A stretch of 64,000 nucleotides of DNA from contig JBLDXI010000019.1 of NCBI GenBank assembly GCA_047495785.1, positions 1,550,001 to 1,614,000 on the forward strand, in the 5' to 3' direction. Positions 4,101 to 55,722 of this stretch are shown here, piece after piece. The DNA comes from Lepidodermella squamata. Lineage: Eukaryota > Animalia > Gastrotricha. Below the pieces are notes generated by a model. That model was not told the origin of the DNA. It saw only the letters and a list, made by a program, of their open reading frames with translations, and made no database searches. A program made the position numbers and the translations under genes. Positions within the stretch are counted from its first letter, which is position 1; each line of letters begins with the position of its first letter.

Positions 4101-5419
4101 ACCGATGACGATGCCGGCCATCTGGAGTGCTGTCTGCGCACCCTGTGCGACCTCATCGATGAAGTCGGCGAAGTTTTCATGAACGAGTGCTCCACCTCGC
4201 TGTCGTCGATGCTTGGCGGAGGCGGTGACATTATCGCTGACGCTGTCACCAAGGCGACGCAGAAGAAGCAGGAAACGGTGACGAAAGTTCGCGTCCACGT
4301 CGACGATGCCGTCAATTTCTTGCAACTGCTGTCGAAAACCGACGCAGGCACAACTGAAAATATGTTCGATTTGACGCTGTCGCAAGCGCTCGGCACCGCC
4401 AAGACGAAGGAACAGGACATTTTGACGTCGACGAAACTGGCCAAGGTTAAGCAGTTGTCCGGCTTCTCGGACCCGGTCTACTGCGAGGCATATGTCAACG
4501 TTAACCAGTACGATATCGTGTTGGATGTGTTCGTCGTCAATCAGACTGGCGATAATTTGCAGAATTTGACCCTGGAATTGGCCACCCTGGGTGATTTGAA
4601 ACTCGTCGAAAAACCGCAGCCGATCACTTTGGCTGCCCACGATTTCACCAACTTTAAAGCCGCTGTCAAGGTAAGCATATTCAACAAGAACCTATTAAGA
4701 CCAAAAAAAATTTTTGCGTCGAATTTCTCAAAAGAAAATGGAATGTAAATCTTCCTTAATTGTTTAATAATTTCTCAATATTTTACATTCAAAATTAAAA
4801 TAATTGTATTGTTGAACCCCAAATTTATGGCAAAATTGTAATTTTTCATATTTTTAAGGTGGCGTCAACGGAAAATGGCATTATTTTCGGAAACATCGTC
4901 TACGACGTGAAAGGTGCCGCTTCCGATCGTTCGGTCATCGTTCTAAACGACATCCACATCGACATCATGGACTACCTGGTGCCGGCCGTGTGCTCGGACG
5001 CCGAGTTCCGCCAGATGTGGGCCGACTTCGAGTGGGAGAACAAGGTCACCGTCAGCACGTCGATGACGGACCCGCGCCAGTACTTGCAGGCCATCATTCG
5101 CGGCACTAATATGAAATCGCTGACCCCGGAAAAGGCGCTCGCCGGCGACTGCGGCTTCCTCGCCGCCAATTTATACGCTCGGTCGATTTTCGGCGAAGAC
5201 GCGCTCGCCAACGTCAGTCTCGAACGCCCGCCGGCTAATGCCGAGGGCGCGCCCGTGCCATGTCTCGGCCACATTCGAATCCGCGCCAAGAGCCAGGGCA
5301 TGGCGCTGAGTCTCGGCGACAAAATCTCGGCCCTCCAGCGCCAGATGATCAAGGGTGTTGCTCAACCGGTGCCGCAGGAAACCGCGAAGCCGGCTGAAAC
5401 TGCGGAAAATTCGGCTTGA
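1189..5419 (+). CDS. COPB1: Coatomer subunit beta (beta-COP); exons ~1189-1682, 2267-3527, 4023-4670, 4859-5419
   Basis: Motifs [59 protein letters not shown] and [20 protein letters not shown]. Canonical GT-AG junctions join the ORFs in frame. Confidence 0.97.
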
Positions 5420-33600: not shown

Positions 33601-36600
33601 AGGAATTTAGTCAAATGGTCGTAGGTGAACCCGACATAATAAATATAACTCATGGCGATGAGGGCAGTTCCTGTCACGGAAAAGGGCGATGAGCCACAAG
33701 GGAAACTGACTTCATGAGTCGTCGCAGACTTGAATAGTTCAATTTTCCATTTGAAATCATTAGTGTTAGTTTTCAGTGAGCCGAAGATACACGGAGTTGC
33801 GCCACATTGAATATAATGAAAAAATGAGAACGACTTTGATAGTTTCGCAAAAAGCGAGGACTGCTGCAGATTGAACGATATTGAAGTGGTTATTTGATAG
33901 GCTGACCTTAGAAAGTTCTTCATGTTCGTAATTGAGAAAGAACCAGCGAGAGCGGCATTAAACCCGTTTCCACTCTGATCATTTTCCCCTGTTATGTTGT
34001 CAAAGTAAATGGAGACGACAGGTCTTGGAAAGTCTGAATAAAGGTATGATAAAGGTTTGCGACTGTAAACATTCGAATCTTACCAGCCCATGGACATCTT
34101 AAGGCTGCGTTTATTTCTGATTTGGTCAACAGTCGATTGTACCATTGCATGCAAAAGACCCACATGTCGACTGTTGGACGATCGTCTATACAGCGTGCTC
34201 GCCAGGTTCCAACGAAAAAGGAGTCTCGAGCGTATCGAACAAAATCCATCGGAGCTATGAAATCAGTATCAATTTCGCCGTTGTAGTACCAAGTTAGTCT
34301 AGATGTTGATGCTTCGTAGGTCCAGCCAATGTTCACCCATGTATTTAGCGGGGGAGTTGGTGGTGTAGCACCGACGTAAACCGGAGCTCCGACTTCAGCG
34401 TTTGGACGAAAAAATCTCCCTCTGTAATTTCCGCATTTAGCGCTCATACTGAATGCAATTACGACAGCAACTCACCCATTATAAACAAACCAAAGATGTA
34501 GCCCTTGGGGAATAAAACAATATACACAATCCCATTTTGAATCTCAGAATAGGACAAACCATAAGTTGCGAAACCCTGGGAGATGTCGGCCCAGTTAACG
34601 ATGCTCATTTCCAAAAACGCGGAAGTTCTGATCCAGACAAAGAATGAGTGATCACCGGGAACACCAATAACCTGATGCCAAGTAAAATATATTGATATTG
34701 CCTATTAATTAAACGCAAATTCTCAAACCTGATTATGAGCGGCGGCATACATGAAATTTTCGCCATCTGGAATTCTTGAAGCTCCATTCACTCGTCCGAA
34801 TGGATCAGTGACAAAATTTATCGACTGAGAGTAATGTATATGATTTCCATTTCCTGACATATCTTGACCACGGCTGAAAATGTCGAACAGCCAGAGACCG
34901 GCCGGGCTCAATTCTTGCTCCATCAAAGGAGTTATCTCAATGTGAGAAATATTTTTCACAGAGCCCAAATCAATATTGATGTACCCAGTTTCTGGTGGCG
35001 ATGCAACGATTCGGCTACAAGTATCCATCCTACCATCCACAAGTGTCGATACGGCTTTGTGGTATACAGTTTGGTTGTTTGTAACAACTGACGTCGCAGG
35101 GCTTGTAACACTGGCCAAGAATGATTGTGCCTCGAAGTTGTAACACCCCAAAACTTCGATTCTCATGCAGCTGAACTGGCCAATGATGTCGCGTGGGTAG
35201 AACCGAATTTTCCGAGCAACAATTGGGTAATCGAAGTAGTTGAACATTGCTTGACTCGGACTTGACGATCCCTGAAAAATTGTTTTCCCTAGCAAATCGG
35301 TCAGCGAAATCCAATCGATTCCAGCATCGTTCAAATAAGCAACGGAGTAGGTCGTCACATAATTTGAACCAGTTACACATCCCTGATCAAGCAAATTGTA
35401 ATTGGTTACCGCCCTTGTCATCAAGGAACTCACTTGTATCGCTGCTCCAGTGACGTAGCGATTTTTTAGGAAGTCAACTTCTAAATAAACATCAGATCTG
35501 TGTGGGGTATTCTCAGCCCATGATCCCCTTTGTGACAGTAATCTGCCATATGCAGGAAAATAAGGATTGTCATTTTTTGTCGAAGTTGCTGTCAGCTGGT
35601 TGTCAGCGATGTCGAAGGAGTGAATACCGAGAGGGCCTGAAAATGCCATGCATCAATGAATTTTACTAAAGATGGGCTCATACTTCGACATTGGGAGTTG
35701 CAGCCGTAGATTGCAACGCGAAGGCAAGGATAAGTGTTGTACAAGATTGGTAAGAACTTGACCCATCGGGTCAACATCGGCCGCCAAAGTTTCCTCGTTA
35801 CAACAGTTAAGCGGTCAGAATTACCTATGAACGTCTAGAAAGAAGGGCGATCATCGCTGAATAGATTAAAGATTCGAAACAACTTACAACTACGTTGCCA
35901 GCTTTGTCGCTGTACTGTCGCCAAACAGCTCCGGCTGGGTCCATGCTGAACTCCAAGCGGTAAGAAGTTACCCAATAAGCATTCACGTCTCCGCCAGAGG
36001 TCGCAACTTTTGTCACCCATTTCGGTGATCCAAGGTCAACGCGTAATTCACCGCCGCCATTGCAAGAACACCAGCTGTATTGCGGAGCATTCAGTCTCGC
36101 GAAAAACGGTTTCTTCAGGATTGTAATAGTTAAACGTGATAATTATTCAATCTCTGTCTACCTGAGTGTCGGACACACATGTTTGAACTCCCACAAAGGA
36201 AGTCGATGGGATTTCGTTGTTAATTACCCCAAGCTCAGTCTCGGTTGGGCAAACAACTGGAATTCGCATGTAAAGTGAGTTGTTAAGGCTCCGCAGATCC
36301 ATGTTCCTCTTCATCTGAGGAAACGTGCTAGCTTCCGGAATTGTTATCCTTACGTAGATAGCTTTGTTTGCAGAATCAACTAGGTTAAAGAAGGATGAAG
36401 AGTCTGCCTCAGCATCAATAAGATCACAGCTTTGAGTCGATGTGTCATGAACGGCAGATCGACACTTGTCATTTCCCGAACATCGAGCCATGCAAATAGC
36501 CTTACCCGCCACAGTGAAGGATGAGATCCTGTATGAAAAGGATGACGCAGAATCACGGAAAGCTGATTCAGTCTTACTTGTGATTGGCGTAAGTGTCTCC

Positions 36601-39676: not shown

Positions 39677-40073
39677 GCTTGGAAAAAGCACGTAGCGTGT
39701 GTACCGCGAAAAGCAATAATAAAAGTCCTTTGTATTTGTAAAATTGATTTGTTCGTATATGGTCGATATTGCCATGCAGCCAGCTGAGATTAAAAATGTA
39801 TAGCGGCCCTGGTAAACAAACAGAAGGATGCACCTGCAACACCTCGAATTTCACCTAGCAATGACGGGAATTATAATATTCGAAATTAATATATTTTTCG
39901 ATTTTCTTCACATTTTATTTACAATATGATTACCGATTTATTGGTGATCTGCAGAGTCAAGACCTTAAAGAGCTTTCTATTTATTATTCAGTGTGAGAAA
40001 TTGTGTGAGAAATTGAGAAATTAACACTAAGGGAAATTGTTCCTTGATTTTCGAATCAAATTCAATCGATTTT

Positions 40074-40349
40074 TTATTTTGATTTGCTCTTGTCGATTCG
40101 AGATTCGTATTCGGCCTTTTTGAAGGCGTTGATGAGTTCTCGGGCCTCAGCGTAGCCGTCTGGTTCCGGTTTCAGGCCGTAAGAAAGCATAAAGTTATGC
40201 ATTCCACCCCACGGCTTCACGATCGAAGCAGTAGATATCGCCGATTCCCATGGTCCTTCCTCGTCGTCCGATTGATTGTGCGCATTGCCGCCGTTATTGT
40301 TGTTGTTTTGATGTTTCGTGGACATGGATACCGATGAAGTTTTATCCAT
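40074..40349 (-). CDS. Microprotein, GGxHNFMxSYGLKP family, copy 1
   Basis: KPWGGMHNFMLSYGLKPEPDGYAEARELINAFKKAEYE; conserved across four tandem ORFs. Confidence 0.85.
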   Translation of the reverse strand: MDKTSSVSMSTKHQNNNNNGGNAHNQSDDEEGPWESAISTASIVKPWGGMHNFMLSYGLKPEPDGYAEARELINAFKKAEYESRIDKSKSK

Positions 40350-40936
40350 AGGAAAGAATAACGATCTGATCTAATAAACAGAACACCAGAAAAAAATAAC
40401 CATATTGACCTATAATTCAAGGTGAGTTTTTTCGATTTTTGAGCATGAATTCAGATAAATTAAAAAAATCGGCGAATTATGATATTTACTTACAGGGCCC
40501 TAATTAAGAGGATTTCTCAAGCTAAAACCCCATCCCAATTAGGGTGATTTTTTTTGAAAATCCGGTACCAGTTATTAGTTAATGAGAAGAAATCCCATTA
40601 TCAATTATCATGCAAAGAATATTTGCTTGTTGGAGTTTGGAGCCACCGTCTCTATAATTTGACACCTGACGCATCGGTCGCGAGATTTCTTCATCGCCAT
40701 GCCACGCGATTATTTCTCCATTAATTTCGAGTCAATTCTTTTCGATTTTCTGATTTTTCTCGAAATTCCAAGACTCAAACTGGTTTTTCCAACAAGAAAT
40801 AGAGACACAACGAAATGCTAAACTTCAGTTTATTTACAAATCTTCAGGGTCTATAGGCTAAATAGCAGTCAGTAAAATCAAAGTCCAAGGAATTTTTCTA
40901 GTTTTTTCGCCATAAAGTTGCTATGACGCTTTCTTA

Positions 40937-41191
40937 TTATGGATGATTCCCGCTTTTCGTGTTCTCGTAGTCGGCCTGCTTGAACGCGTTGATGATTGAT
41001 TTAGCCTCAGCGTAGCCTTCAGGCGTTGGTTTCAGACCGTAGGAAGCCATGAAATTGTGCATTCCGCCCCATGATTTCGTGATTTCCGAAGTCGGAATCG
41101 ACTGCCAGCCGCTGCTGTTAGCGCCGGAGTTGCTCGGCTGGTTACCCGATGTCTGATTGTTGTAGCTGTTACTGTTGTTCTTCGACGACAT
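40937..41191 (-). CDS. Microprotein family, copy 2
   Basis: KSWGGMHNFMASYGLKPTPEGYAEAKSIINAFKQADYE. Confidence 0.88.
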   Translation of the reverse strand: MSSKNNSNSYNNQTSGNQPSNSGANSSGWQSIPTSEITKSWGGMHNFMASYGLKPTPEGYAEAKSIINAFKQADYENTKSGNHP

Positions 41192-42779
41192 TGCCGCCCT
41201 GAATAGTTGAAGATGAGCAAATTCGATAAAATCTAAAAAGACAGAAACAGATAGAAAATGAATATCTCAATCGGCTATGGCTATTCAGTTCTGTTTATAA
41301 CAGACATGGCAAAGCAATGAAAATAATAATTCAGGAATATGACCTTTCATCCCCTTCTCTCTGGTAATAATGATGATCAAAAAGGAGGTCAAGTGTTTTG
41401 ATTCAATTTTTCAATGGCGTTTTTCTTGAAAATGATTCACGGGAGACATGTAAAACCATATATGCCTGAAATAGATTTTTCAAGGAGATTCCTCTATTTC
41501 TCCTAAGATCGGTGTAATTTCCGGTTTCAAAAAATGTCACAACATGTTTATGACCTACTTCCATGCGCAAGGATGATTAGGGTAATAAATAATTATTATT
41601 CACCCGGGTAGGTCACCGGCAATTTTGCGGACGCGGGCTGTAATAAAGGTTGCGAAATGAAAAGGAGAATGGCCGGTCGATTAATGAATAGAAATCAACC
41701 CGCAATGGTCACCACCATCGCAGACATTCGCAGACGAGTTCTCGCCTCCGGCATACATTTTTCATACATTTTTGACTGGAAAGGAACATGAAGAAAACTT
41801 GGCCAGGTAATAAGTATATCAGACTTAAATCGATTCGATAGGTGTCGATTATATTATGTTGATTGAAAGATTTGTCGACTTTTATAACCTCGTTTGAATT
41901 TTCGTTAACCAAAAAATTCCAGCTGACTGTGTAATTTCCAGAAAATAATATTCGCCTTCAATGCAGTTTTTGAGGCGCACATACAACGTGTCCCATAAGT
42001 AACGCAAGCGAAGAAAACACTTGGAAAAAGGTTCAGAAACTCTAAAATAAGAGACGAGAACACATCTCATGGCCGGAAGTTTTTTTAAGAATTTCAAAAA
42101 TCACGAGAATATTAATCAACGAGAATGTCACTTGTCAATGGGATTAAAAATTCCGGAGAAATTTGGTCCTATTAGGTATAATACCGAAAATTACCGAACC
42201 CATTTGAGTTTTCCGGGTAAATTGTGTATTTCTTCGGTTAAATCGCGCATAAAAGTTGGAATATTCTCTCGGTAGTTTTAATGAATTAGTTGAATTTCCT
42301 ACAAGAAGTTGCCAAATTAAAAATGCGCAACTTCTGGGACACGCCGTATGTGTTTTCAAAATTTGTTTGCCTTCAAAGCTGAGCCAAAATTCATATGTTC
42401 AGGGTTTTACTTTTAGCGGAACCGAATTTTGAAAATTAATTCGCCAAAACTGTCATTTCTGAATTTTCTGGAAATTTACTATTGATTCGGAAACTCCAAA
42501 TAAATTGCGTTGAAATCCCCTTGAAATATGTCGAAGTAGAAAGCCTGGTCCTCAACTTCCCAACGAGACGCATTCCTGATCGAAAATAAATATTCGAAAC
42601 CGGCATATTTTGAACATTTGCGTTTGCTGTCAAATTAATCGGCCAAAAATTCGGATATGTTTTTATTTAGTAAAATCAGGGTTATCAGAGCGAATAGGTG
42701 ATCATCATTTAATTGTCAATGAAATGTTTCAGTTTTGTCTTGACTTGGATTGGCTATATCAATTTGACACCAAGTGCTT

Positions 42780-43034
42780 TCATTTCGATTGATTACCGCT
42801 GCTGCTTGCTTGGTAATCAGCCTGCTTAAAAGCGTTGATAATGGCGTTGCCCTCCGCATAGCCTGACGCTGTCGGTTTCAGCCCGTAAGAAGCCATGAAG
42901 TTGTGCGTTCCACCGTACGAATTCGTGATAGCCGAATGCGGAATCGACTGGCCGCTGCTGCCGATGGCGCCTGAACTTCCCGAGTGATGACCGTAGGCCT
43001 GAGTACTGCTGCTGCTGCTTCCCTTGGAAGACAT
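42780..43034 (-). CDS. Microprotein family, copy 3
   Basis: ATG at 43034 (MSSKG..); NSYGGTHNFMASYGLKPTASGYAEGNAIINAFKQADYQ. Confidence 0.87.
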   Translation of the reverse strand: MSSKGSSSSSTQAYGHHSGSSGAIGSSGQSIPHSAITNSYGGTHNFMASYGLKPTASGYAEGNAIINAFKQADYQASSSGNQSK

Positions 43035-43502
43035 GTTCCGATAAAGTTGCCAAAGGAAAATAAACACAGGTTAAAGTCTCTAAAAAACATACATTTGATT
43101 TGAAAATTTGAATTATAAATTAAACATCGCGTTCGATTGACGTGTGAGTCATAAAGAGACAGCAACCGCGCAATAATCGTAACGACACGTAATAATAAGG
43201 GACATAAAGGTCAGGTCTCAGGTCATTTTTAAGAAACGTCCCAGTTTTGTTTACGATACAAAACGCATTTTACTCAATAGGTATGAAGGATTTGCCGAAA
43301 AATGGGCGACAATGATTTAGTCTTTTAATTGGAAATTATTTGCGAATAGCGTAATTAGGAATTTTTTACTTGGAAAAATAGGCCAAATTTGCATTATCTA
43401 ATACTGCAAAATTCAATAAATATTCCAATCGATTTCTGTCAAATTTTTACTTGAATCAATCGTATAGAGTAATTTCAGTCAAATTGGACCAGTGGTTCAG
43501 TC

Positions 43503-43769
43503 CTACTTCGATGAGCCGTTACTTTGGCCGCCTTGAGACTCGTAGTAATCTGCCTTCTTGAATTCATTGATCAGCGACTTGGCCTCGCCGTAAGCGCCAG
43601 GCTCGTGCGGCTTGATTCCGTACGAATGCATAAAGCCGTGCATCCCACCGTACGGCTTCGTGATCGAATAGCTCGAAATCGATTGCCAGCCTGATGCTTG
43701 GCTAGCGCCAGCTTGGCCGCCTCCGGTGGCGTTGCTGCTGCTGTTGTAATTTCCATGGGATGACGACAT
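43503..43769 (-). CDS. Microprotein family, copy 4
   Basis: KPYGGMHGFMHSYGIKPHEPGAYGEAKSLINEFKKADYY; TATAAAA ~90 bp upstream. Confidence 0.87.
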   Translation of the reverse strand: MSSSHGNYNSSSNATGGGQAGASQASGWQSISSYSITKPYGGMHGFMHSYGIKPHEPGAYGEAKSLINEFKKADYYESQGGQSNGSSK

Positions 43770-44181
43770 GGTTATAAGATTATTTAAATCGACGTTATTT
43801 CCGAGAGCGAATTTCGCGGCTGTTGAAAGGCTGATATTTCCAATGAACGTACACTGATTTTATAGGGTGATTAAAGTGTAACAGCAGGCTGCTAGGTGCT
43901 AGTAAACACGACGAGCACGTGCCTATTCCACCCGCGGATCAATTGTTTTAGGGTCGAATCGGTGCTCTTGACAGTTCATTTTACATAAGAAAAACTTCAA
44001 ACTTGAAAACCTTCTTGAACCAAGGTTCTTTTAGAGTTTATTCGATGCAGCTATTTATACTCCAATGAGTATCGTCAATGTACATTATGCAGCAGGGTTT
44101 CATAAAATATCAAGTTTCACTGCTTTTTGACTGTTCAAAAATCTAAGAGAGCTTTTATTTAGTGATTGTTTTTTTTCCAGG

Positions 44182-47100
44182 TCAAAATACCATAATCTCC
44201 GATATCGATATAGAATTTGGATAGATTGCCAAAGCTCGGTAGATGAACACGTATCGGCCATAGGTTGGCGCCAAGCACCACAGCGTGCTAATGCCACCCG
44301 ACATCATGTCAGTCGGATCAACCGAGTCGCAGTATTTAGCTGAATTGACGTTTGTCGTGTTTCCAACCCGCATGTCAAGACTGGTTATTTGCGTTTCTTT
44401 TCAAAAAACAAATTCACGAGTAAAAACGAAATTTCTGAGGAATTTACCTGTCATATCGTTAGCGTAGACTACGACTACTCTCGTGATTTTTGCTGAGTAA
44501 ACAAGATCGAAATAAATATATTGGCCAGTTGAGTTGAAACCCAATGAGTTTGATGTAGCCTGGGGCAAGCCGTCTGTTGTGTAGAAGACAGCATCAGGAG
44601 TCTGAAAGTTAGCTCCAGCCATCCCGGGCCTAACATTTTTGACCATTGAAACAGCTCAATACATAAAAATCCAATATACGCTCAGCAAAAGATAGGCATA
44701 TGATCAATTTACCTGAATCGCTTGCAGCGTCGATTTCGCAGATTCCGAGTTCAAGTGATGGGGCTGAAGCAGCAACAGTCAAAAATCGACCCATTAAGCC
44801 AGGGTTGCACCGTAGTTTAAGCTTGGCTCCGCTGTATGAATGGCTTGCAGTCGCGAAACAAACCTGACTGAACGGATCTGCCGATGAGTTGGAGATGCCG
44901 ACGGTGATAGGCGGCATAACTGGCAGGGTGTCGTAATCAACTAAACTCATATTAGCGAGTGACCATAAAGAAGGCAAAATGATGTCTCTTACCATCGCAA
45001 CCTTTCACACCGAAACGTCCAGCCATAGGACCTGCGTAGTCTTGAGGGTAGAAGCGAACAAACTTTCCGATGAATGGTCCAACTGAACTTTCGACAATGT
45101 CATCTCTATTACCGGTCAAGAGCTTAAAAACGTTACGATTTATGATTGGATAATCTCCATAAACCTTAGCACAATGAACCTTTAAAAATCCATCCGGATC
45201 TCGCGGACCATCCCAGTTCAAACCATCTCGGCTATACCGAAAGTAATAACTCGTGATATACCAGTTGCCCCCGTTCCCCCGAATTGCTGCTTTTGTGATC
45301 TTTTTCAGTGAGTTCAGCTGAGCTTGCCACCACACATTCCCACTGGATGGCGCAGCAGGAACCGATGTCGAATAGCCAGCGAGCCAAAAACCAGCACTCC
45401 CTATGTAGCCTCGAAAAGCCTCATTTCCAGCATATTCGTTCAATGCTGTTATCTGGGAATCCGGCACATCGGCCAAAAGATCAGCATTGCAACTAGGCAC
45501 TGAAAAAAACAAGGATTTGCGTTGTATCCCGGAAACTTCGGTAAAACTCACAATCACAGCCGTAGAGGGCGACGCGAAGAGCAACAGAAATATTGAAGTT
45601 GTTCGGCACAATTCGAATGAACATGGTATCAATTTCAGGGTACAAGCGGGTATGTGCTGCAAGGTATGCATTATTACTACCTCGGAATAGCTGAAATTTC
45701 CGTTAAGTACAAGCGATGTAAAAAGATTGGTACGAAGAATTACGGAGTTATTTCCGGAGGCTTTGTCCAGGTAAAATTGCCAGTTGACTGCAGCGCTACT
45801 GCCCCTGGCAGCAAACTGGACGTAGTAGTCAAAGACATAATAGTTCCCGCCTATCGACTTGTCGCTTGTTCCTTTCACAGCTACAGCAGCGACACGTTTC
45901 ACCATCGGAAATTTGAACTGCAATATCATGACAAATTGGTAAGCTTTATCGATTTGTGGGGAGCCATAAGTTACCTGCAACCAGCCCGGAGCAGTGGCTG
46001 GTCTCCAGCAGCAAGCCTTCGGCGAGCTGAAAACACCGTCGAGACCTTTTGCCCGTTCGGGTGTCCAGTCATAGCCATTTGTAGCCATTGCGGAGGACGA
46101 TGCTGTAACGTCAGCATCTGAAATAATGCTTGTCAGATCGCTTTTGCATTGTCTCGGTTCGATTTGGGTTGTTGGGCAGCCGTTCATTACGTCGTTTATT
46201 TCCTCCATGGTAAGTGCGTATTTGTGAATTCGCAGACAATGGTAGCAGAACTTCGAATATGCAGAAGACCACGGGACTTTTCCAATACTCATCATCATCT
46301 GGCCTTGCAGGGTGCAGTTGGCCAACGCTTGAGAACTAACGCTTGCCCCGTTTATGACTATTGATAGTTTTCCATTCGCTGGATCAGCAACGTAAGCCAA
46401 ATGGTACCAGGTACTTGTTGTGAGACTATTAACTGAGTCTTTATAAATAGAAGTATAAACGCCTGCGTATGATCCATTGGCACATCTATGATTTGCATCT
46501 ATAAACGGGTTACCAGATCCATTATGGTTATTCATTGCAACAACCTGAAAAATCAAGGTGCTATTCTATCAATACGCTGCGATCATAGAGAACGTAGTCA
46601 TCAACACTACGTCTCTATGGCTGCGATTTTCGATGAACGCTTACTTGACCAGTATTATTGTGCAGGTGGAAGATGGGCCCATCGACGAAAGCAGTGAAAT
46701 AAATCTATCAAGAGAGTCTCGTGAATGAGGTTAGGATTTACAGGAAAAGCCAACCCAGAGTGATATGGTGAAGGCGTAATCGAGTGAATAATACGCTGGA
46801 ATCTGGCTCTGTTGATAATTTGAGCCGTTGAAGCAAATCGAAGTCAACGGAAGGTTGGCTTTATACGTCGGTGAACTGCCCCATAAAACTGATGTATTAA
46901 AGCCCATTACCTGCCCGGAAACTGGGCGAACCATATCCAGGAAGTTCGAGTTGCATTGGAAAGCTTGGTAAGTAGCATAAACAGCAATGGCCTTAAACTC
47001 GTTCGCTTCAGAATCATTAGCATTAGACTGCAAACATGTAAAATATGATATAATTACTTACCAACACTGAGCGGGCAAGTGCGCAGCATATTGACATGCT

Positions 47101-50100
47101 GCTGGCTCAGGGATCGATCGAAAATTTTGATACATGCAGCCCTTCCGCTCACTCCACCCACAGAGAGGAACTGCCCCGCGGTAGGGCTGATGGCGTAAGT
47201 TGACGAGAGGCTCCCGCTACCAACTGGGTGTCCTTCGATGAAGAATCGTAGAAGTCTCGTAACATGGTCAAAAGTGAAGCCCACATAGTAAGGAACATCC
47301 TGGCAAATTAAAAATTAAAATCATTCCGCCCAAATCACAGAGCTTACCCTGGATAGAGACGCTGTTCCCGTAATTGTAACCAATGATCCACCGCAATTTA
47401 TGACGACGTCGTTAGTAGTCGCTGTCCTGAACAAGTTGATACTCCAAGTGGCATTAGTCCCATTGGTCAGGATCCCAAAGGTGCAAACTCCAGTTGAACA
47501 TGCCACATGATGGAAGAAGGAGAAGGACCTCGAAAGTCTGGTCAGCAGCGTCGTGTTATCAAACCTCACCGATGCAGTCGTTGACAGCTGATACGCCTTA
47601 TTCGGGAATTGCGCCAGGCTAGTCAAATTTGGCGAGCCAACAGCTGCAGCATTGAACCCATTTCCACTCTGATCCGACAGGCCTGTCAAGCCGTCGAGAT
47701 GGATCGAAGCGATAGGGCGCGGGAATTCAGCCCAAGGGCATCTCATCGCTGCGTGAATGTCAGATTTGGTCAAAAGGCGGTTGTACCACTGCATGCAGAA
47801 AACTGATATATCACCAAAACGATTGTCTTGACAGGCGGCTCGGAACATTCCGATGAAGAACAAGTCTGTAGCATATCGTGGAATGTTGACCGTAGAGTAG
47901 AAATCAGTGTCGATTTCGCCGTTGTAGTACCACGTTAGCCTGTTTTTAGCCAACTCGAATGTCCATCCGATGTGAACCCAAGTGTCGACAGGAAAGCCAG
48001 CAGGGTTTTTGCCGATATACGATGATTCATTAGATGCAGATCCTCCTCGAAGATATCTCCCGTTTCTAGAAGAATAATATGAAATTTTATCCTAGGCATG
48101 AACAGTTGGAAACAGACACAAGCCAAATCTGCAGGCCTGGAAAATGTAAAAACTGATCAACATCATTTGAACGCAGGGAAACTGCCTCACCCCCAGCTGC
48201 TGTATCCGCGGTATTGTCAGGCCAATTGACAATGTTACCTTCAAAGTACCCCGTCGCACTTTTGACCCATATGAAGAATGAGTGATCCGTCGCGGTGTTC
48301 AGAACAGGGTTGTGCGCAGCTCCATACATCATGCCGTCCTCAACTTTTTGCACTCGCGATGCTCCATTAACGCGCCCGAATGGGTCTGGGACAAACGTGA
48401 TCGACTGGGAGTAGTAGATGTGGTTACCATTCCCACTCATATCCTGGCCACGGCTGTAGATGTCGAAAAGCCATAGCCCAGCCGGGTTAAGTTCTCCCTC
48501 CATTATCGGCGTGATTTCGACATAGTCCACTGATTTCGCTGAGCCCAAATCAACCGTGACCGAGGCCGCCTGAGTAGCACTGGCTACGATACGGCTGCAA
48601 GTGTCCGCCCTCCCGTCAATCAGCATCGAAACAGGCCGGTGGAATACAGTGAAATTCGTGAAAACTGATGCGCTGGCTTGACTGATCAAATCAGTCATGT
48701 AAGACCTAGCATCGACGTCGTAACAGCCCATTACTTCCAGCCGCATGCAACTCAGAGTGCTGAGAGCTTTCGGCCAGATGCGGATCCATCTAGCGACTAT
48801 AGGATAGTCGAAGTAATTGGCGATGGCTTGATTCACGTTAGTATTTCCAGCGAAATCGGTATTTCCTGATATGGTTGTCACGTAACTCCAATCCGGGTCT
48901 GAATCAGACCGGTACAAAACCGAGTAACTCGTCACCCACCAAGAGTTCGTAATACAACCCTAATAATAGTTTTGTGAATTGGTGGTTATAAAAGATCTTC
49001 TATGTATATTACTTGAATTATCACGCCCGTAACAATGCGGTTCCGTAAGAAGTCGACCTCAAGATGGGAATCGAGACGGCTTGGTGCAAGCTCGGCCCAC
49101 GATCCGCGTTTTGAATTCAGTCGTGCGTAAAACGGAGGAAAATTAAACCTGGCCGAATTTGAAGTCATCTGGCTATCATTCACGTCAAACGAATGAACAC
49201 CAAGTGGGACTAGGAAACAAAATCTGTCGAAATCCATGCTATAGATCAAGAACGCTTACCTCGGCAGATGGAGTTGCAGCCAAATACCGCCATTCGCAGG
49301 CACGGAAAGCCATTCCACGTTACGGCCACGAACCTTACAAAACGAGTGAGAAACGCCCGCCAAAGCCGGTTTGCGACGACTGAGCTTCGATCGGTATTTC
49401 CATTAGAGATCTACAAAAGCATGCGTTTTACAATTGAATAGGCGAATGTTTTAGTCTGATAGGATATTGATACTGATTTATTTGCGCAATTTGTCTCGCG
49501 ACGTTTAGCAATTTGTATAAAAGGGTCAAGGCGCCTCGCCACTGATAAATAGTTTATTTTTCAAGTTCACAAGCAATAAGCAATCCTTTCTTAAGAGACA
49601 CTCAGCAACTATATTTTCGTGCCGTTATATAGACCTCTCGGCAGTCTAAGCTCCACCCACCGCAGGATGACCACCGCCACCCACGCTCTGCCTTTTCACG
49701 GTCATCATGCACGGTTGCTAGCAGATAACGTCATTTGGGGCTATCGCATATCGCAGCTTAAGCGGCTATTCTGTGACACGTTCGTTCAAGCAGTAGAATG
49801 AGGAAATAGGAGATGGAGTGAAAGTCGATGCAATTTGCAGGGAGTTACCTCGATAGCAGACACTTATTCTGTAATCTGAGGTCAAAGAGTAAATGTTTCT
49901 GAAGCTATGGACCCACCTTTCAGGTGTAAGTTTAACTCAAGAAAATCTCTGTGTTGCATCGAATTTACTGGACCCGAATATATCGACCCGAGAACGTCGC
50001 CCGATTTCATTTGAATCTACAGACGCTTAGGAACCTTAGAAAATGTAAAACCCCCGATCCGATGCATAATTGTGTCTTCTGTCAAATTAATTGCGCCCGA

Positions 50101-52921: not shown

Positions 52922-55722
52922 GTATATTCAACTCTCCCCAACGGAAATTACCCGAAGCAACGCACCCAATGCGATTATCCCCGTGCGCGCGCGCCCAACG
53001 CGATAATCCCCAAAATTAATGCGCACCGAGTAAACAATTGAGTAAATAAACTTTATTCAAGCCACAACAACGAAAAGTAAAAGGAAAAGACCAAGCAACA
53101 AAGCCACAACAAATTACGAGTTACAAATAGAAATTTCAACAAATTTTCTAATATTTTTTTTTCTTCAACAATTTTGAGACGTTATCAAGAAATTCAATGA
53201 GCAAATCATTTTTCTTCTTATGCTTCAACGGGTCCCGAGAGGCGGCTAGGTGAACTAAATTTTCGTTAAACGCTTTTTCGACATTAATTAAGGCTTGATT
53301 TTTTAAACACTGGTTCTTCTTCGACTTGCACAACGGCTTGCCCTGTTTTTCGAACTTGGCCATCTTGACAGCTACTTCGGCCTCCTCTTTTTGAATAGAC
53401 TCAATGAAAAACCAGATAGCAGGGTGTTTGCGATGATTAGCGACCACGTTCATGCGGTGATGCCACCCTTCGACGCCGTTGTTTGTTCGAATGCACTGTC
53501 CATGAACATTCCATTCACTGATTGGAAAACGCTTCATCCAGGTGCCGCGGAAATATTTTTCGAAGTCCTTTTCCCTCAGCATAGGTGGCAATTTGGAGAA
53601 GAGCAACTCAGCGGCGGCCTCAACTTCGTCTTCTTTGAGCAGGGCAAGAGCCTGGAAGCGGCGAATCGTGACGTAGACGACGTTAGACACTTGACGGCCG
53701 TCTGATCCCATGATCCGGTTGCCATCGTCGTCGGTCGGCGGCCCCGATTCATACTCAGTCTAAAAGTAACAGGTTAAAATCGAATTGAAGAGGAAGAAAT
53801 TAGCTCACCTTTAGGCCATTTTCGTCGACCCAGGTACGGAGGGCTTTGCAGAAATGAAAAAAGCATCCCACGATCTTGACCAGCTTGCCATTCTTGCCCC
53901 GCAACTTCCGAATTACGGGCAGGAGGCCACTCTCGAAGTCGCACGTCGCCTCCTCGAGCTGCAGCTCTTCGTGCGTCGCGTCGATTGCGTTCATTAGAGT
54001 TTCAAAGACCCGAGTGTAAAGGGCCGAGCTCTTCTCAGACATGAGGACAAATGCCGCCGGAAATGTCGCGCCGTCTCTCATCGTGTGAATGGAGAACATT
54101 TGGTAAAAGATTTTCGGGCTTATCGCGAAAGTGCCGTCGAAAAACCAGCGGCTCGCCCTTGCCAATCGCTGGAATCCACGGCTTGTAGCGAAAACGATGT
54201 AGGACTTGCCGTCCTCACCTTTCTCCAGATGATACAGAAACTTTTCGTTCTTGTCATGCGTTAAGATGAAGGCTTCAATTTTCGCTTGTGTTTCCTCGTC
54301 TAGATCTTTGGCGATGGCTGATTGCAGCAGCTCAAACAAGTCGTCCAACGACGTCGGGTTTTTCGGGTACTTCTTGCCTCGGCGCTTGTACAGCCCAGAG
54401 ACGATCTCGTCGAGGTCCGGGAACGCCTCGCGTACCTCCAAGTCCGAGATCTCGCTTTTCACTTGACGGTAGTGTTGACCGGGAACGACGGCCGGCTGGT
54501 TGGAGATGAGCCACCGAACTTTAGCCATGTTGATTTCAACCTCGACTCCAACTCGGTCTGGTTCGTGGTTGTGCTCTAACAACAAAATTAAATCAAAATC
54601 AAACAATTTTAGTCGAAATATCGAATTACCTCCATGTTTCGGCGCCTCTTCTAGGTTGAACCGGTAACAAGCGCTGTTATGCCCTTCTGGCCACTCGGGA
54701 AGCGGGCTAGTCCACGTACAGTGGCAGTTCAATTCGCCACGGTGGTCGTAGCAGCGGACGTAGACGGCGCCGTTTTTGCGTCGGTCAAACAGGTACCGAT
54801 GGCCGGCGTGACACAAGACTTTGCCATCCTTGGACGACTTGTAGTAAACAGCGTGCTTCTCGGGCTGAAAATCCAACATGGCCTGCATTTGATCAGGGGT
54901 GAGGCTCAAGTTCGTTGCCTGTGGAACTGTTTGCTGCTGAACTGTTTCTTCGAGCTGGCGAACGCGGGCCTTCAGCAGGCGCACGGTGTTCGGCGAGGCG
55001 AAATCGCTTGAGTCCGCTACTTGAGGCGGGTGCTGTTCCGGCACTTCGACGCTGAAGTCGTTTGAAGCCGAGTTGCTCTGATTCTCGAGATCCGGCATGC
55101 TGTCCTCGCTAAGTTGCGGCGAGGCCACGCGCGGCGGTATCGGCGGTTGAGTGGCCACAACGACTGGATTAGCTCTGCTTGCCTTAGCTGTTGAGAACGT
55201 AATCGGATTAAAGACGGGCGGTGGTGTTGACGCGGGTGCCACTCGCTGTGCCGTCTTCTTCTTAGCTTGCGCTTGTCTGACCGGCGGTGGATCGACAGCC
55301 GGTTGCTCAGACACTTTCACCTTGTTTTTTGAACCAGGCGGCCGCCCGGGTTTACGCTTTACAGGTGCTGCTATGCGGATGGTACCATTAGTAAAAAAAA
55401 AACCCAGCTTAAGAAAGTGTGTACCTTCAGCGTTATCAGCCGTAACTTGAGAATCGGTAACGATTGCTTTGCGTTTACCCATCAGAACGTCGAATATCAA
55501 ATATCAAAATGATTGCAGGTTGATGATGAATGCGAATTCCTCGTGCTTTCCTGGCTACTCTACTCTGTGTCATCAGGTGTGGGCGCCTGCCTGCGCGCGC
55601 GAGTTTCCTTGTGTGTGTTCGTGCGCGCGTGTGTGTATTGTTATAATCCACTTGGGGAACGCAACAGCGCGGTGGGGATATGGTGCTATGGGTATTTTCC
55701 GTTGGGGTGAGTTGAATCATTC
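52922..55722 (-). mobile_element. Complete Mutator-like DNA transposon (MULE), 2.8 kb
   Basis: ~40-bp imperfect TIRs (ATTCAACTC[T/A]CCCCAACGGAAA[T/A]TACCC); identical 9-bp TSD AGTAGCGGC at 52913-52921 and 55723-55731; internal transposase. Confidence 0.93.
53148..55482 (-). CDS. MULE transposase with AT-hook and FLYWCH-like zinc finger, 3 introns
   Basis: KPGRPPGSKNK; GHRYLF..YVRC..CHC; WFFDGTF, CDFE, GCFFHFCKA, YFRGTWM..WN, RTNNGVEGWH (DDE triad plus CxxH). Confidence 0.92.

Follow-up and report, generated by a model that had tools for sequence, protein, structure and literature searches.

The window analysed here is a stretch of 64,000 nucleotides from the gastrotrich Lepidodermella squamata (positions 1,550,001-1,614,000 of contig 19, which is 3.62 Mb long), and it carries a tandem array of four small genes whose products are real members of an undescribed protein family; this family is weakly linked to a known bacterial repeat, and its host here is unexpected. 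The family, named hereafter by its motif WGG-NFM-SYGLKP, is new in the sense that it is public only as sequences of hypothetical proteins, without a Pfam entry, a solved structure or a paper that we could find; literature searches with the motif, with the locus tags of fungal members and for the function of the bacterial repeat family PF18780 returned no relevant paper. The copies are old, and their core is kept by selection at the protein level.

All four genes are intronless and lie on the minus strand, each encoding a protein of about 9 kDa. The first-pass annotation, made from the sequence alone, had described four co-oriented, intronless open reading frames (ORFs) of about 85-90 amino acids (aa), and these were recovered as genes of 84-91 aa (Table 1), with neither stops nor frameshifts in any of them. 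For gene 3, the mechanical ORF reaches beyond the ATG used here, to a GTG at 43067. Alignment of the four proteins reveals 23 invariant columns and a conserved core of 45-50 aa following the pattern W.SI..SI.K.(W/Y)GG(M/T)H(N/G)FM.SYG(L/I)KP..(G)Y(A/G)E...(I/L)IN.FK.A.Y, which is far beyond chance. Gene 1 has diverged most and carries an acidic stretch ahead of its core, and gene 4 represents a long-loop subtype (KPHEPGAY) that in the domain tree is nearest to repeat 1 of a second locus on the same contig. Copies in the window were counted with a hidden Markov model (HMM) of the family, searched against every stop-to-stop piece in six frames over the whole 64 kb. The four genes score at E 1e-30 to 1e-35, no other piece scores below E 2.9, and the 1.6 kb that separate genes 2 and 3 contain no decayed copy. 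The window thus holds exactly four copies, none of them decayed.

Pairwise Nei-Gojobori counts among the four genes were made separately for core and tail. Across the pairs, the proportion of synonymous differences (pS) is 0.54-0.80, near saturation, and the proportion of nonsynonymous differences (pN) is 0.14-0.27 in the core versus 0.27-0.61 in the Ser/Asn/Gly-rich N-terminal tails. The 300-bp flanks of the four genes show no real similarity to one another with blastn; one long match, between the upstream flank of gene 3 and the downstream flank of gene 4, is the physical overlap of the two flank windows. Saturated synonymous sites, a constrained core and unlike flanks together indicate that the copies are old and maintained by protein-level selection. 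The four ORFs are therefore real genes, with a core under purifying selection. A variable Ser/Gly/Asn-rich N-terminus followed by a conserved core, and selection on the protein amid diverged intergenic DNA, had both been proposed at first pass, and the counts bear out both.

The gene 2 protein served as the query for homologue searches and for structure modelling. A word-based search returned three proteins, two metagenomic and one from Geranomyces michiganensis (E 9.5e-10). These three were combined with eight gastrotrich domains, those of the array and of the second locus, into a family profile, which was searched against 1.84 billion representative sequences and retrieved 390 cluster representatives at E≤1e-3 and 62 at E≤1e-10. 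Single-domain proteins of 60-90 aa are common among these relatives, and others contain two to eight repeats. A broader family profile, itself built including the window genes, matches them at E 1.5e-24 to 7e-30. The profile search and a second word-based search together yielded about 45 homologues from named organisms, and every eukaryotic one is fungal. They span five phyla: Chytridiomycota (Geranomyces, Rhizophlyctis, Phlyctochytrium), Blastocladiomycota (Paraphysoderma), Mortierellomycota (Mortierella, Gryganskiella) and, within Dikarya, many Basidiomycota (Agaricomycetes, Rhodotorula) and scattered Ascomycota. No animal sequence is among them, in a search that covered protein collections and not animal genome assemblies. 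The only bacterial family match among the named sequences is an HNH_repeat protein of Enterococcus pallens; an AraC-type bacterial protein in the P0075 cluster is unrelated in sequence and was taken as a clustering glitch. As a lead only, the nearest clusters in the ESM Atlas (score 0.86) are also fungal hypothetical proteins. Scans of the four proteins against Pfam, NCBIfam and PHROGs gave no match, for Pfam even at E≤1. Judged by profile scores and architecture, the window genes belong to an unnamed eukaryotic family; the motif that the first-pass annotation mentioned for small uncharacterised fungal proteins is indeed found there. No named animal family covers the genes, as it had supposed, nor does a Pfam family.

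Environmental sequences extend this distribution. A metagenome contig of 16 kb (L018; 45% GC, intron-poor) bears a family copy with neighbours that include COX11, phosphatidylserine synthase, a Sec31-like gene and a kinase. The closest named relatives of its COX11 are from Perkinsus, dinoflagellates, Vitrella and Plasmodium, which places the family in an alveolate-like protist as well. The nearest relatives of the window genes themselves are 59-71% identical, share the MSS(K/N) start and were found on short, AT-rich eukaryotic contigs (24-26% GC), whose neighbouring ORFs are orphans, unmatched in the gastrotrich genome and without Rfam hits. These contigs belong to the European Nucleotide Archive (ENA) assemblies ERZ23491350, ERZ19032966, ERZ19571327 and ERZ27313306. 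Separately, two environmental members (P0029 and P0041) sit side by side on a 3949-base metagenome contig (ENA assembly ERZ27275342) and group weakly in the tree with different gastrotrich subtypes, so that tandem pairs of distinct subtypes would also exist outside the gastrotrich.

The tie to a known family concerns PF18780 (HNH_repeat). Two family members, a metagenomic protein with four repeats (P0006; 33.5 bits) and a Somion occarium protein (P0010; 27 bits), pass the Pfam gathering cut-off of 26 bits, while neither the four window proteins nor 49 single-domain members match PF18780 at E≤1. In the other direction, the E. pallens protein, with 20 HNH_repeat units, matches the family profile at E 6.6e-12. 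When the bacterial repeats were cut into pieces that straddle the junction of two successive units, hhalign aligned the family with PF18780 over 24 columns with 93.5% probability (E 2.4e-7). The motif (K/R)x(W/F/Y)GGxxNFMxSYGLKP is thus probably distant kin to the second half of the PF18780 unit.

Structure prediction depended on the depth of the alignment. With 11 sequences AlphaFold2 was unsure (predicted local distance difference test, pLDDT, of 65), and with 148 sequences the gene 2 model reaches a pLDDT of 90-95 at residues 31-78. Helices are predicted at 28-31, 34-39 and 44-50, followed by a long one at 57-80, and residues 1-27 are disordered, with pLDDT mostly below 65. The core is therefore confidently modelled as a compact, small helical domain behind a disordered tail. 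Elsewhere in the family, this domain is found in larger proteins: it has a Tubby domain as fusion partner in Rhizophlyctis, occurs as six repeats followed by CCCH zinc fingers in Phlyctochytrium, and forms the C-terminus of a 1074-aa helicase of the AAA_11+AAA_12 (Upf1/MOV10) type encoded on a metagenomic contig of 60% GC (L017:71-3292). In the latter, the domain is flanked by CxC ... HxxCH, a Cys/His form also present in P0007, P0008, P0070 and P0095 and apparently corresponding to a zinc-clasped version of the domain.

The tandem repeats and the fusions to helicase, CCCH and Tubby domains lead us to infer a small binding module. The four proteins are very hydrophilic (grand average of hydropathy, GRAVY, of -1.11, -1.11, -0.60 and -0.90), contain 7.7-17% Gly and no cysteine, and have no signal peptide or hydrophobic N-terminus; they are thus predicted to be soluble proteins that do not enter the classical secretory pathway, which also argues against a secreted defence peptide. 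We propose that each gene is separately transcribed and would give a soluble intracellular protein of about 9 kDa with one helical domain of about 50 residues. This domain would bind RNA, another nucleic acid or a conserved partner protein, and the stand-alone gastrotrich proteins would act as small binding or regulatory factors. From the analogy with its fusion partners, such a role is possible, and we put it forward tentatively, at clearly less than even confidence.

The domain is not confined to the array. A profile search of the whole genome (121 Mb in 151 contigs) revealed a second locus about 330 kb away on the same contig, with four more domain copies. Read exon by exon, with no joined coding sequence built, it has the appearance of a single spliced gene in which each of four exons codes for one repeat of the domain. 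Copy 1 starts with an ATG at position 5072 of the extracted region (L011) and ends at a GTGAGT donor at 5293; the first intron, of 53 nt, ends with TTTTAG at 5345, and the frame runs on into copy 2. Copies 3 and 4 have no ATG of their own, and the donors and acceptors between repeats 2 and 3 and between 3 and 4 keep the frame. All inter-repeat introns are GT-AG introns in phase 2, a classic arrangement where repeats multiply through the duplication of exons. The idea of a microprotein family consequently stands for the four window genes but does not describe the whole genome, which also has this four-domain gene. The second locus, with its apparently spliced repeats, thus shows a domain that is fully established in the genome. 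The family is physically integrated in the host genome: its loci lie on a 3.6 Mb contig, have animal genes on both sides (for kinase, ankyrin, F5/8-type-C and acyltransferase-3 proteins) and include short introns of the host type.

Regarding the origin of the genes, we slightly favor an old horizontal acquisition from a microbial eukaryote. Once in the host, the genes would have been duplicated, and introns would have been gained and exons duplicated. Domain trees were built with 271 rows and, more carefully, with 89 rows. In the larger one, the gastrotrich copies fall in a subtree of 53 rows together with chytrids, Mortierellomycota and unnamed sequences, and most Dikarya sequences lie outside it, the branches being unsupported. 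The first-pass annotation had suggested horizontal acquisition; the lack of animals among the named homologues agrees with this, while the alveolate-like carrier and the comb-shaped trees leave it short of established. Taken as a whole, the combination of old paralogues, a binding module and a likely horizontal origin is an explanation with an even chance of being correct. A more far-reaching version, in which WGG-NFM-SYGLKP is a widespread eukaryotic binding module that descended from the PF18780 repeat, moved among fungi, protists and at least one animal lineage, has a role with RNA or ribonucleoproteins, and in the gastrotrich provides both microprotein regulators and a four-domain protein, appears quite unlikely.

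Several observations weigh against the favored explanation. The domain is not basic, and its Dikarya versions are acidic, which is a poor fit to direct nucleic-acid binding. The structural comparison suggested at first pass found the confident helical core without a match to any characterised fold, and hence without a structural neighbor for a binding fold: two models were compared by Foldseek, with all E values above 5, and by exhaustive VIA-align, with a best Z of 4.2, and no solved fold rose above noise. The helix-turn-helix proteins lambda CII and FocB, at Z of about 4, stand among many unrelated rows and are not evidence. A profile search of Protein Data Bank (PDB) sequences returned chance-level rows only. 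The transcript and assembly index has no record of the window proteins. The match to PF18780 is just 24 columns long and could reflect a convergent helix-GG-helix motif, and a short match of one member to Bcl-2 BH2 shows how readily such a motif finds matches. The latter (TIGR00865; residues 243-275 of P0006, E 6e-7, 29.5 bits against a cut-off of 283) is at the motif level only: the shared stretch is (W)..GGWxxF..xYG, GGWxxFMxxYG in P0006, the window proteins have no match, and no Bcl-2 chain appeared in the profile searches of PDB sequences. As to origin, both domain trees are largely combs. In the free tree, the eight gastrotrich domains are not monophyletic, and the approximately unbiased test for a single clade is borderline (p 0.077) and does not reject it. 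Finally, the nearest relatives, on their AT-rich eukaryotic contigs, could themselves come from animals.

Some of these points fit vertical inheritance, whereby an old eukaryotic or opisthokont domain was kept by gastrotrichs and lost, or left unannotated, in most animals. The presence of the family in five fungal phyla and an alveolate-like protist is compatible with such an age, as are the saturated synonymous sites of the gastrotrich copies, their diversity (two loop-length subtypes, besides the lack of a common clade) and the host-type introns at one locus. The AT-rich contigs with the nearest relatives might belong to other small animals, and genes of 80 aa are routinely overlooked by annotation. 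Against this, the about 45 named homologues include no animal, choanoflagellate or other holozoan despite the many annotated animal proteomes, and the tree places the gastrotrich copies among early-diverging fungi and environmental sequences, away from its base. In addition, the GC content at third codon positions (GC3) is 0.56-0.69 in the four genes versus 0.41-0.54 in eight neighboring ORFs, a difference that could reflect high expression or a foreign past. We thus consider vertical descent unlikely, if still a serious competitor of horizontal acquisition.

An alternative to the binding module, along the lines of the stress or desiccation role proposed in the first-pass annotation, is that the proteins are stress protectants, hydrophilin-like and expanded in tandem, whose bulk physical effects, and no specific binding, would shield cells or resting eggs from drying or freezing. 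The hydrophilic, Gly-rich and cysteine-free composition, the disordered N-terminal tails, the tandem amplification and a GC3 that could result from high expression are all in line with it. Measured against the composition of hydrophilins (Gly >6%, mean hydrophilicity >1), all four proteins are rich enough in Gly, and only two of them also reach the hydropathy level. Moreover, conservation is seen in a folded domain with a strict motif and not in the low-complexity tail, which evolves freely, and the same domain resides inside helicase, zinc-finger and Tubby proteins, unlike bulk protectants. Bulk protection is therefore a weaker idea than the binding module, and we regard it as improbable. Multiple-displacement amplification (MDA) yields chimeric reads. 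The published L. squamata assembly (122 Mb, 157 contigs, N50 3.9 Mb), whose statistics fit those of the genome analysed here, was obtained from MDA DNA and filtered with BlobTools, 370 non-metazoan contigs having been removed (PMC11660948). That fungal or protist DNA was stitched in by such reads is nevertheless very unlikely because there are two separate loci, each between ordinary animal genes, one of them with 53-nt GT-AG introns of the host's short type; the saturated synonymous differences further imply that the copies are not repeats of a single inserted read, and even the closest outside sequence is only 61-71% identical.

If the favored explanation holds, WGG-NFM-SYGLKP would be a new domain family with hundreds of clusters at 50% identity across fungi, for which the confident fold model, the link to a bacterial repeat and the fusions to helicase, CCCH and Tubby domains would be the first anchors. 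A family with a fungal and protist distribution would be at home in a gastrotrich, with two loci, eight domain copies and introns gained there. This would bear on foreign or patchily kept genes in small freshwater invertebrates beyond rotifers and tardigrades, in which 80-aa genes of this kind are easily left out of annotation.

Sequence signals around the genes are collected in Table 1. An AATAAA or ATTAAA lies 67-174 nt downstream of every stop, with a second candidate for gene 3, and a TATAAA box ahead of gene 4 may be its promoter. A pyrimidine run followed by AG, resembling a splice acceptor, precedes the ATG of all four genes (by 41-50 nt in genes 2-4 and about 21 nt in gene 1); these sites could mark introns in the 5' untranslated region (5'UTR) or trans-splice sites. 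In a close environmental relative (P0171, contig L015), GC3 is 0.55 in a contig of 21% GC. In the ORFs flanking the array, a Pfam scan recognised a protein-kinase fragment, ankyrin repeats and F5/8-type-C/LamG proteins, and found no nuclease domain. The F5/8-type-C (discoidin) ORFs around the array, one of which is also LamG-like, suggest a local lectin-like gene family. Another ORF, of 566 aa, combines FLYWCH zinc-finger and MULE transposase domains at a local GC peak of 52% and is probably a Mutator-like transposon.

Table 1. Features of the array and its surroundings, in window coordinates unless stated otherwise (CDS, coding sequence).
Feature	Position	Strand	Description	Evidence
Gene 1	40074..40349	minus	CDS with stop, 91 aa	ORF list, alignment, family HMM E 5e-35
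Gene 2	40937..41191	minus	CDS with stop, 84 aa	ORF list, alignment, family HMM E 1e-35
Gene 3	42780..43034	minus	CDS with stop, 84 aa from ATG at 43034	ORF list, alignment, sequence reading, family HMM E 5e-30
Gene 4	43503..43769	minus	CDS with stop, 88 aa	ORF list, alignment, family HMM E 2e-32, tree
TATAAA box	43859..43864	minus	candidate promoter element, ~95 nt before gene 4 ATG	sequence reading, pattern scan
AATAAA polyadenylation-type signal	39980..39985	minus	89 nt past gene 1 stop	pattern scan
AATAAA signal	40829..40834	minus	103 nt past gene 2 stop	pattern scan
ATTAAA signal	42708..42713	minus	67 nt past gene 3 stop	pattern scan
AATAAA signal	42662-42667	minus	second gene 3 signal	pattern scan
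ATTAAA signal	43324..43329	minus	174 nt past gene 4 stop	pattern scan
Acceptor-like sites, genes 2-4	41232-41240, 43080-43087, 43820-43830	minus	putative	
F5/8-type-C (discoidin) ORFs	34723-35649, 44952-46556, 48087-48935	minus	one also LamG-like	Pfam scan
FLYWCH/MULE ORF	53800-55500	minus	566 aa, probable Mutator-like transposon	
Second locus	L011:5072-6854 = contig 19 ~1,920,072-1,921,854 (outside window)		four domain repeats, one per exon; apparently one spliced gene	profile search

Compared with known systems, the window proteins resemble hydrophilins, late embryogenesis abundant (LEA) proteins, yeast Hsp12/Stf2 and the tardigrade CAHS proteins in being small, hydrophilic, Gly-rich and partly disordered and in having genes in tandem. 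This likeness is an analogy only: they show no sequence kinship with hydrophilins, LEA or CAHS proteins in the Pfam scan and, unlike them, have a conserved, folded helical domain. With PF18780, which is found in bacteria and archaea, the probable kinship lies in the alignment of RFGSWxxFLxxAGLEP with KxWGGMxNFMxSYGLKP in the family. The first half of the PF18780 unit of about 54 residues, with the first helix and the GRxP turn, has no counterpart in the family, and PF18780 forms arrays of 17-20 units, often together with a homing endonuclease, whereas each window gene has one domain. The closest comparison is with fungal hypothetical proteins such as KAF9962284.1 (Mortierella alpina), HDU86_003676 (Geranomyces michiganensis), KAG0050864/5 (Gryganskiella cystojenkinii) and AGABI1DRAFT_113057 (Agaricus bisporus), in which the domain is present at full length and matches the family profile at E 1e-20 to 1e-50. 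They share the size of about 75-90 aa and the layout of a Ser/Asn/Gly-rich tail followed by the core, as do P0013, P0014 and P0020; a W.SIP...I extension ahead of the core is common to gastrotrich, chytrid and Mortierellomycota members, and fungi as well as the gastrotrich have tandem-repeat versions. In Dikarya members, the loop is longer and acidic (KPWDxDD). What sets the window proteins apart from their named fungal relatives is an identity of 40-50% and the animal host.

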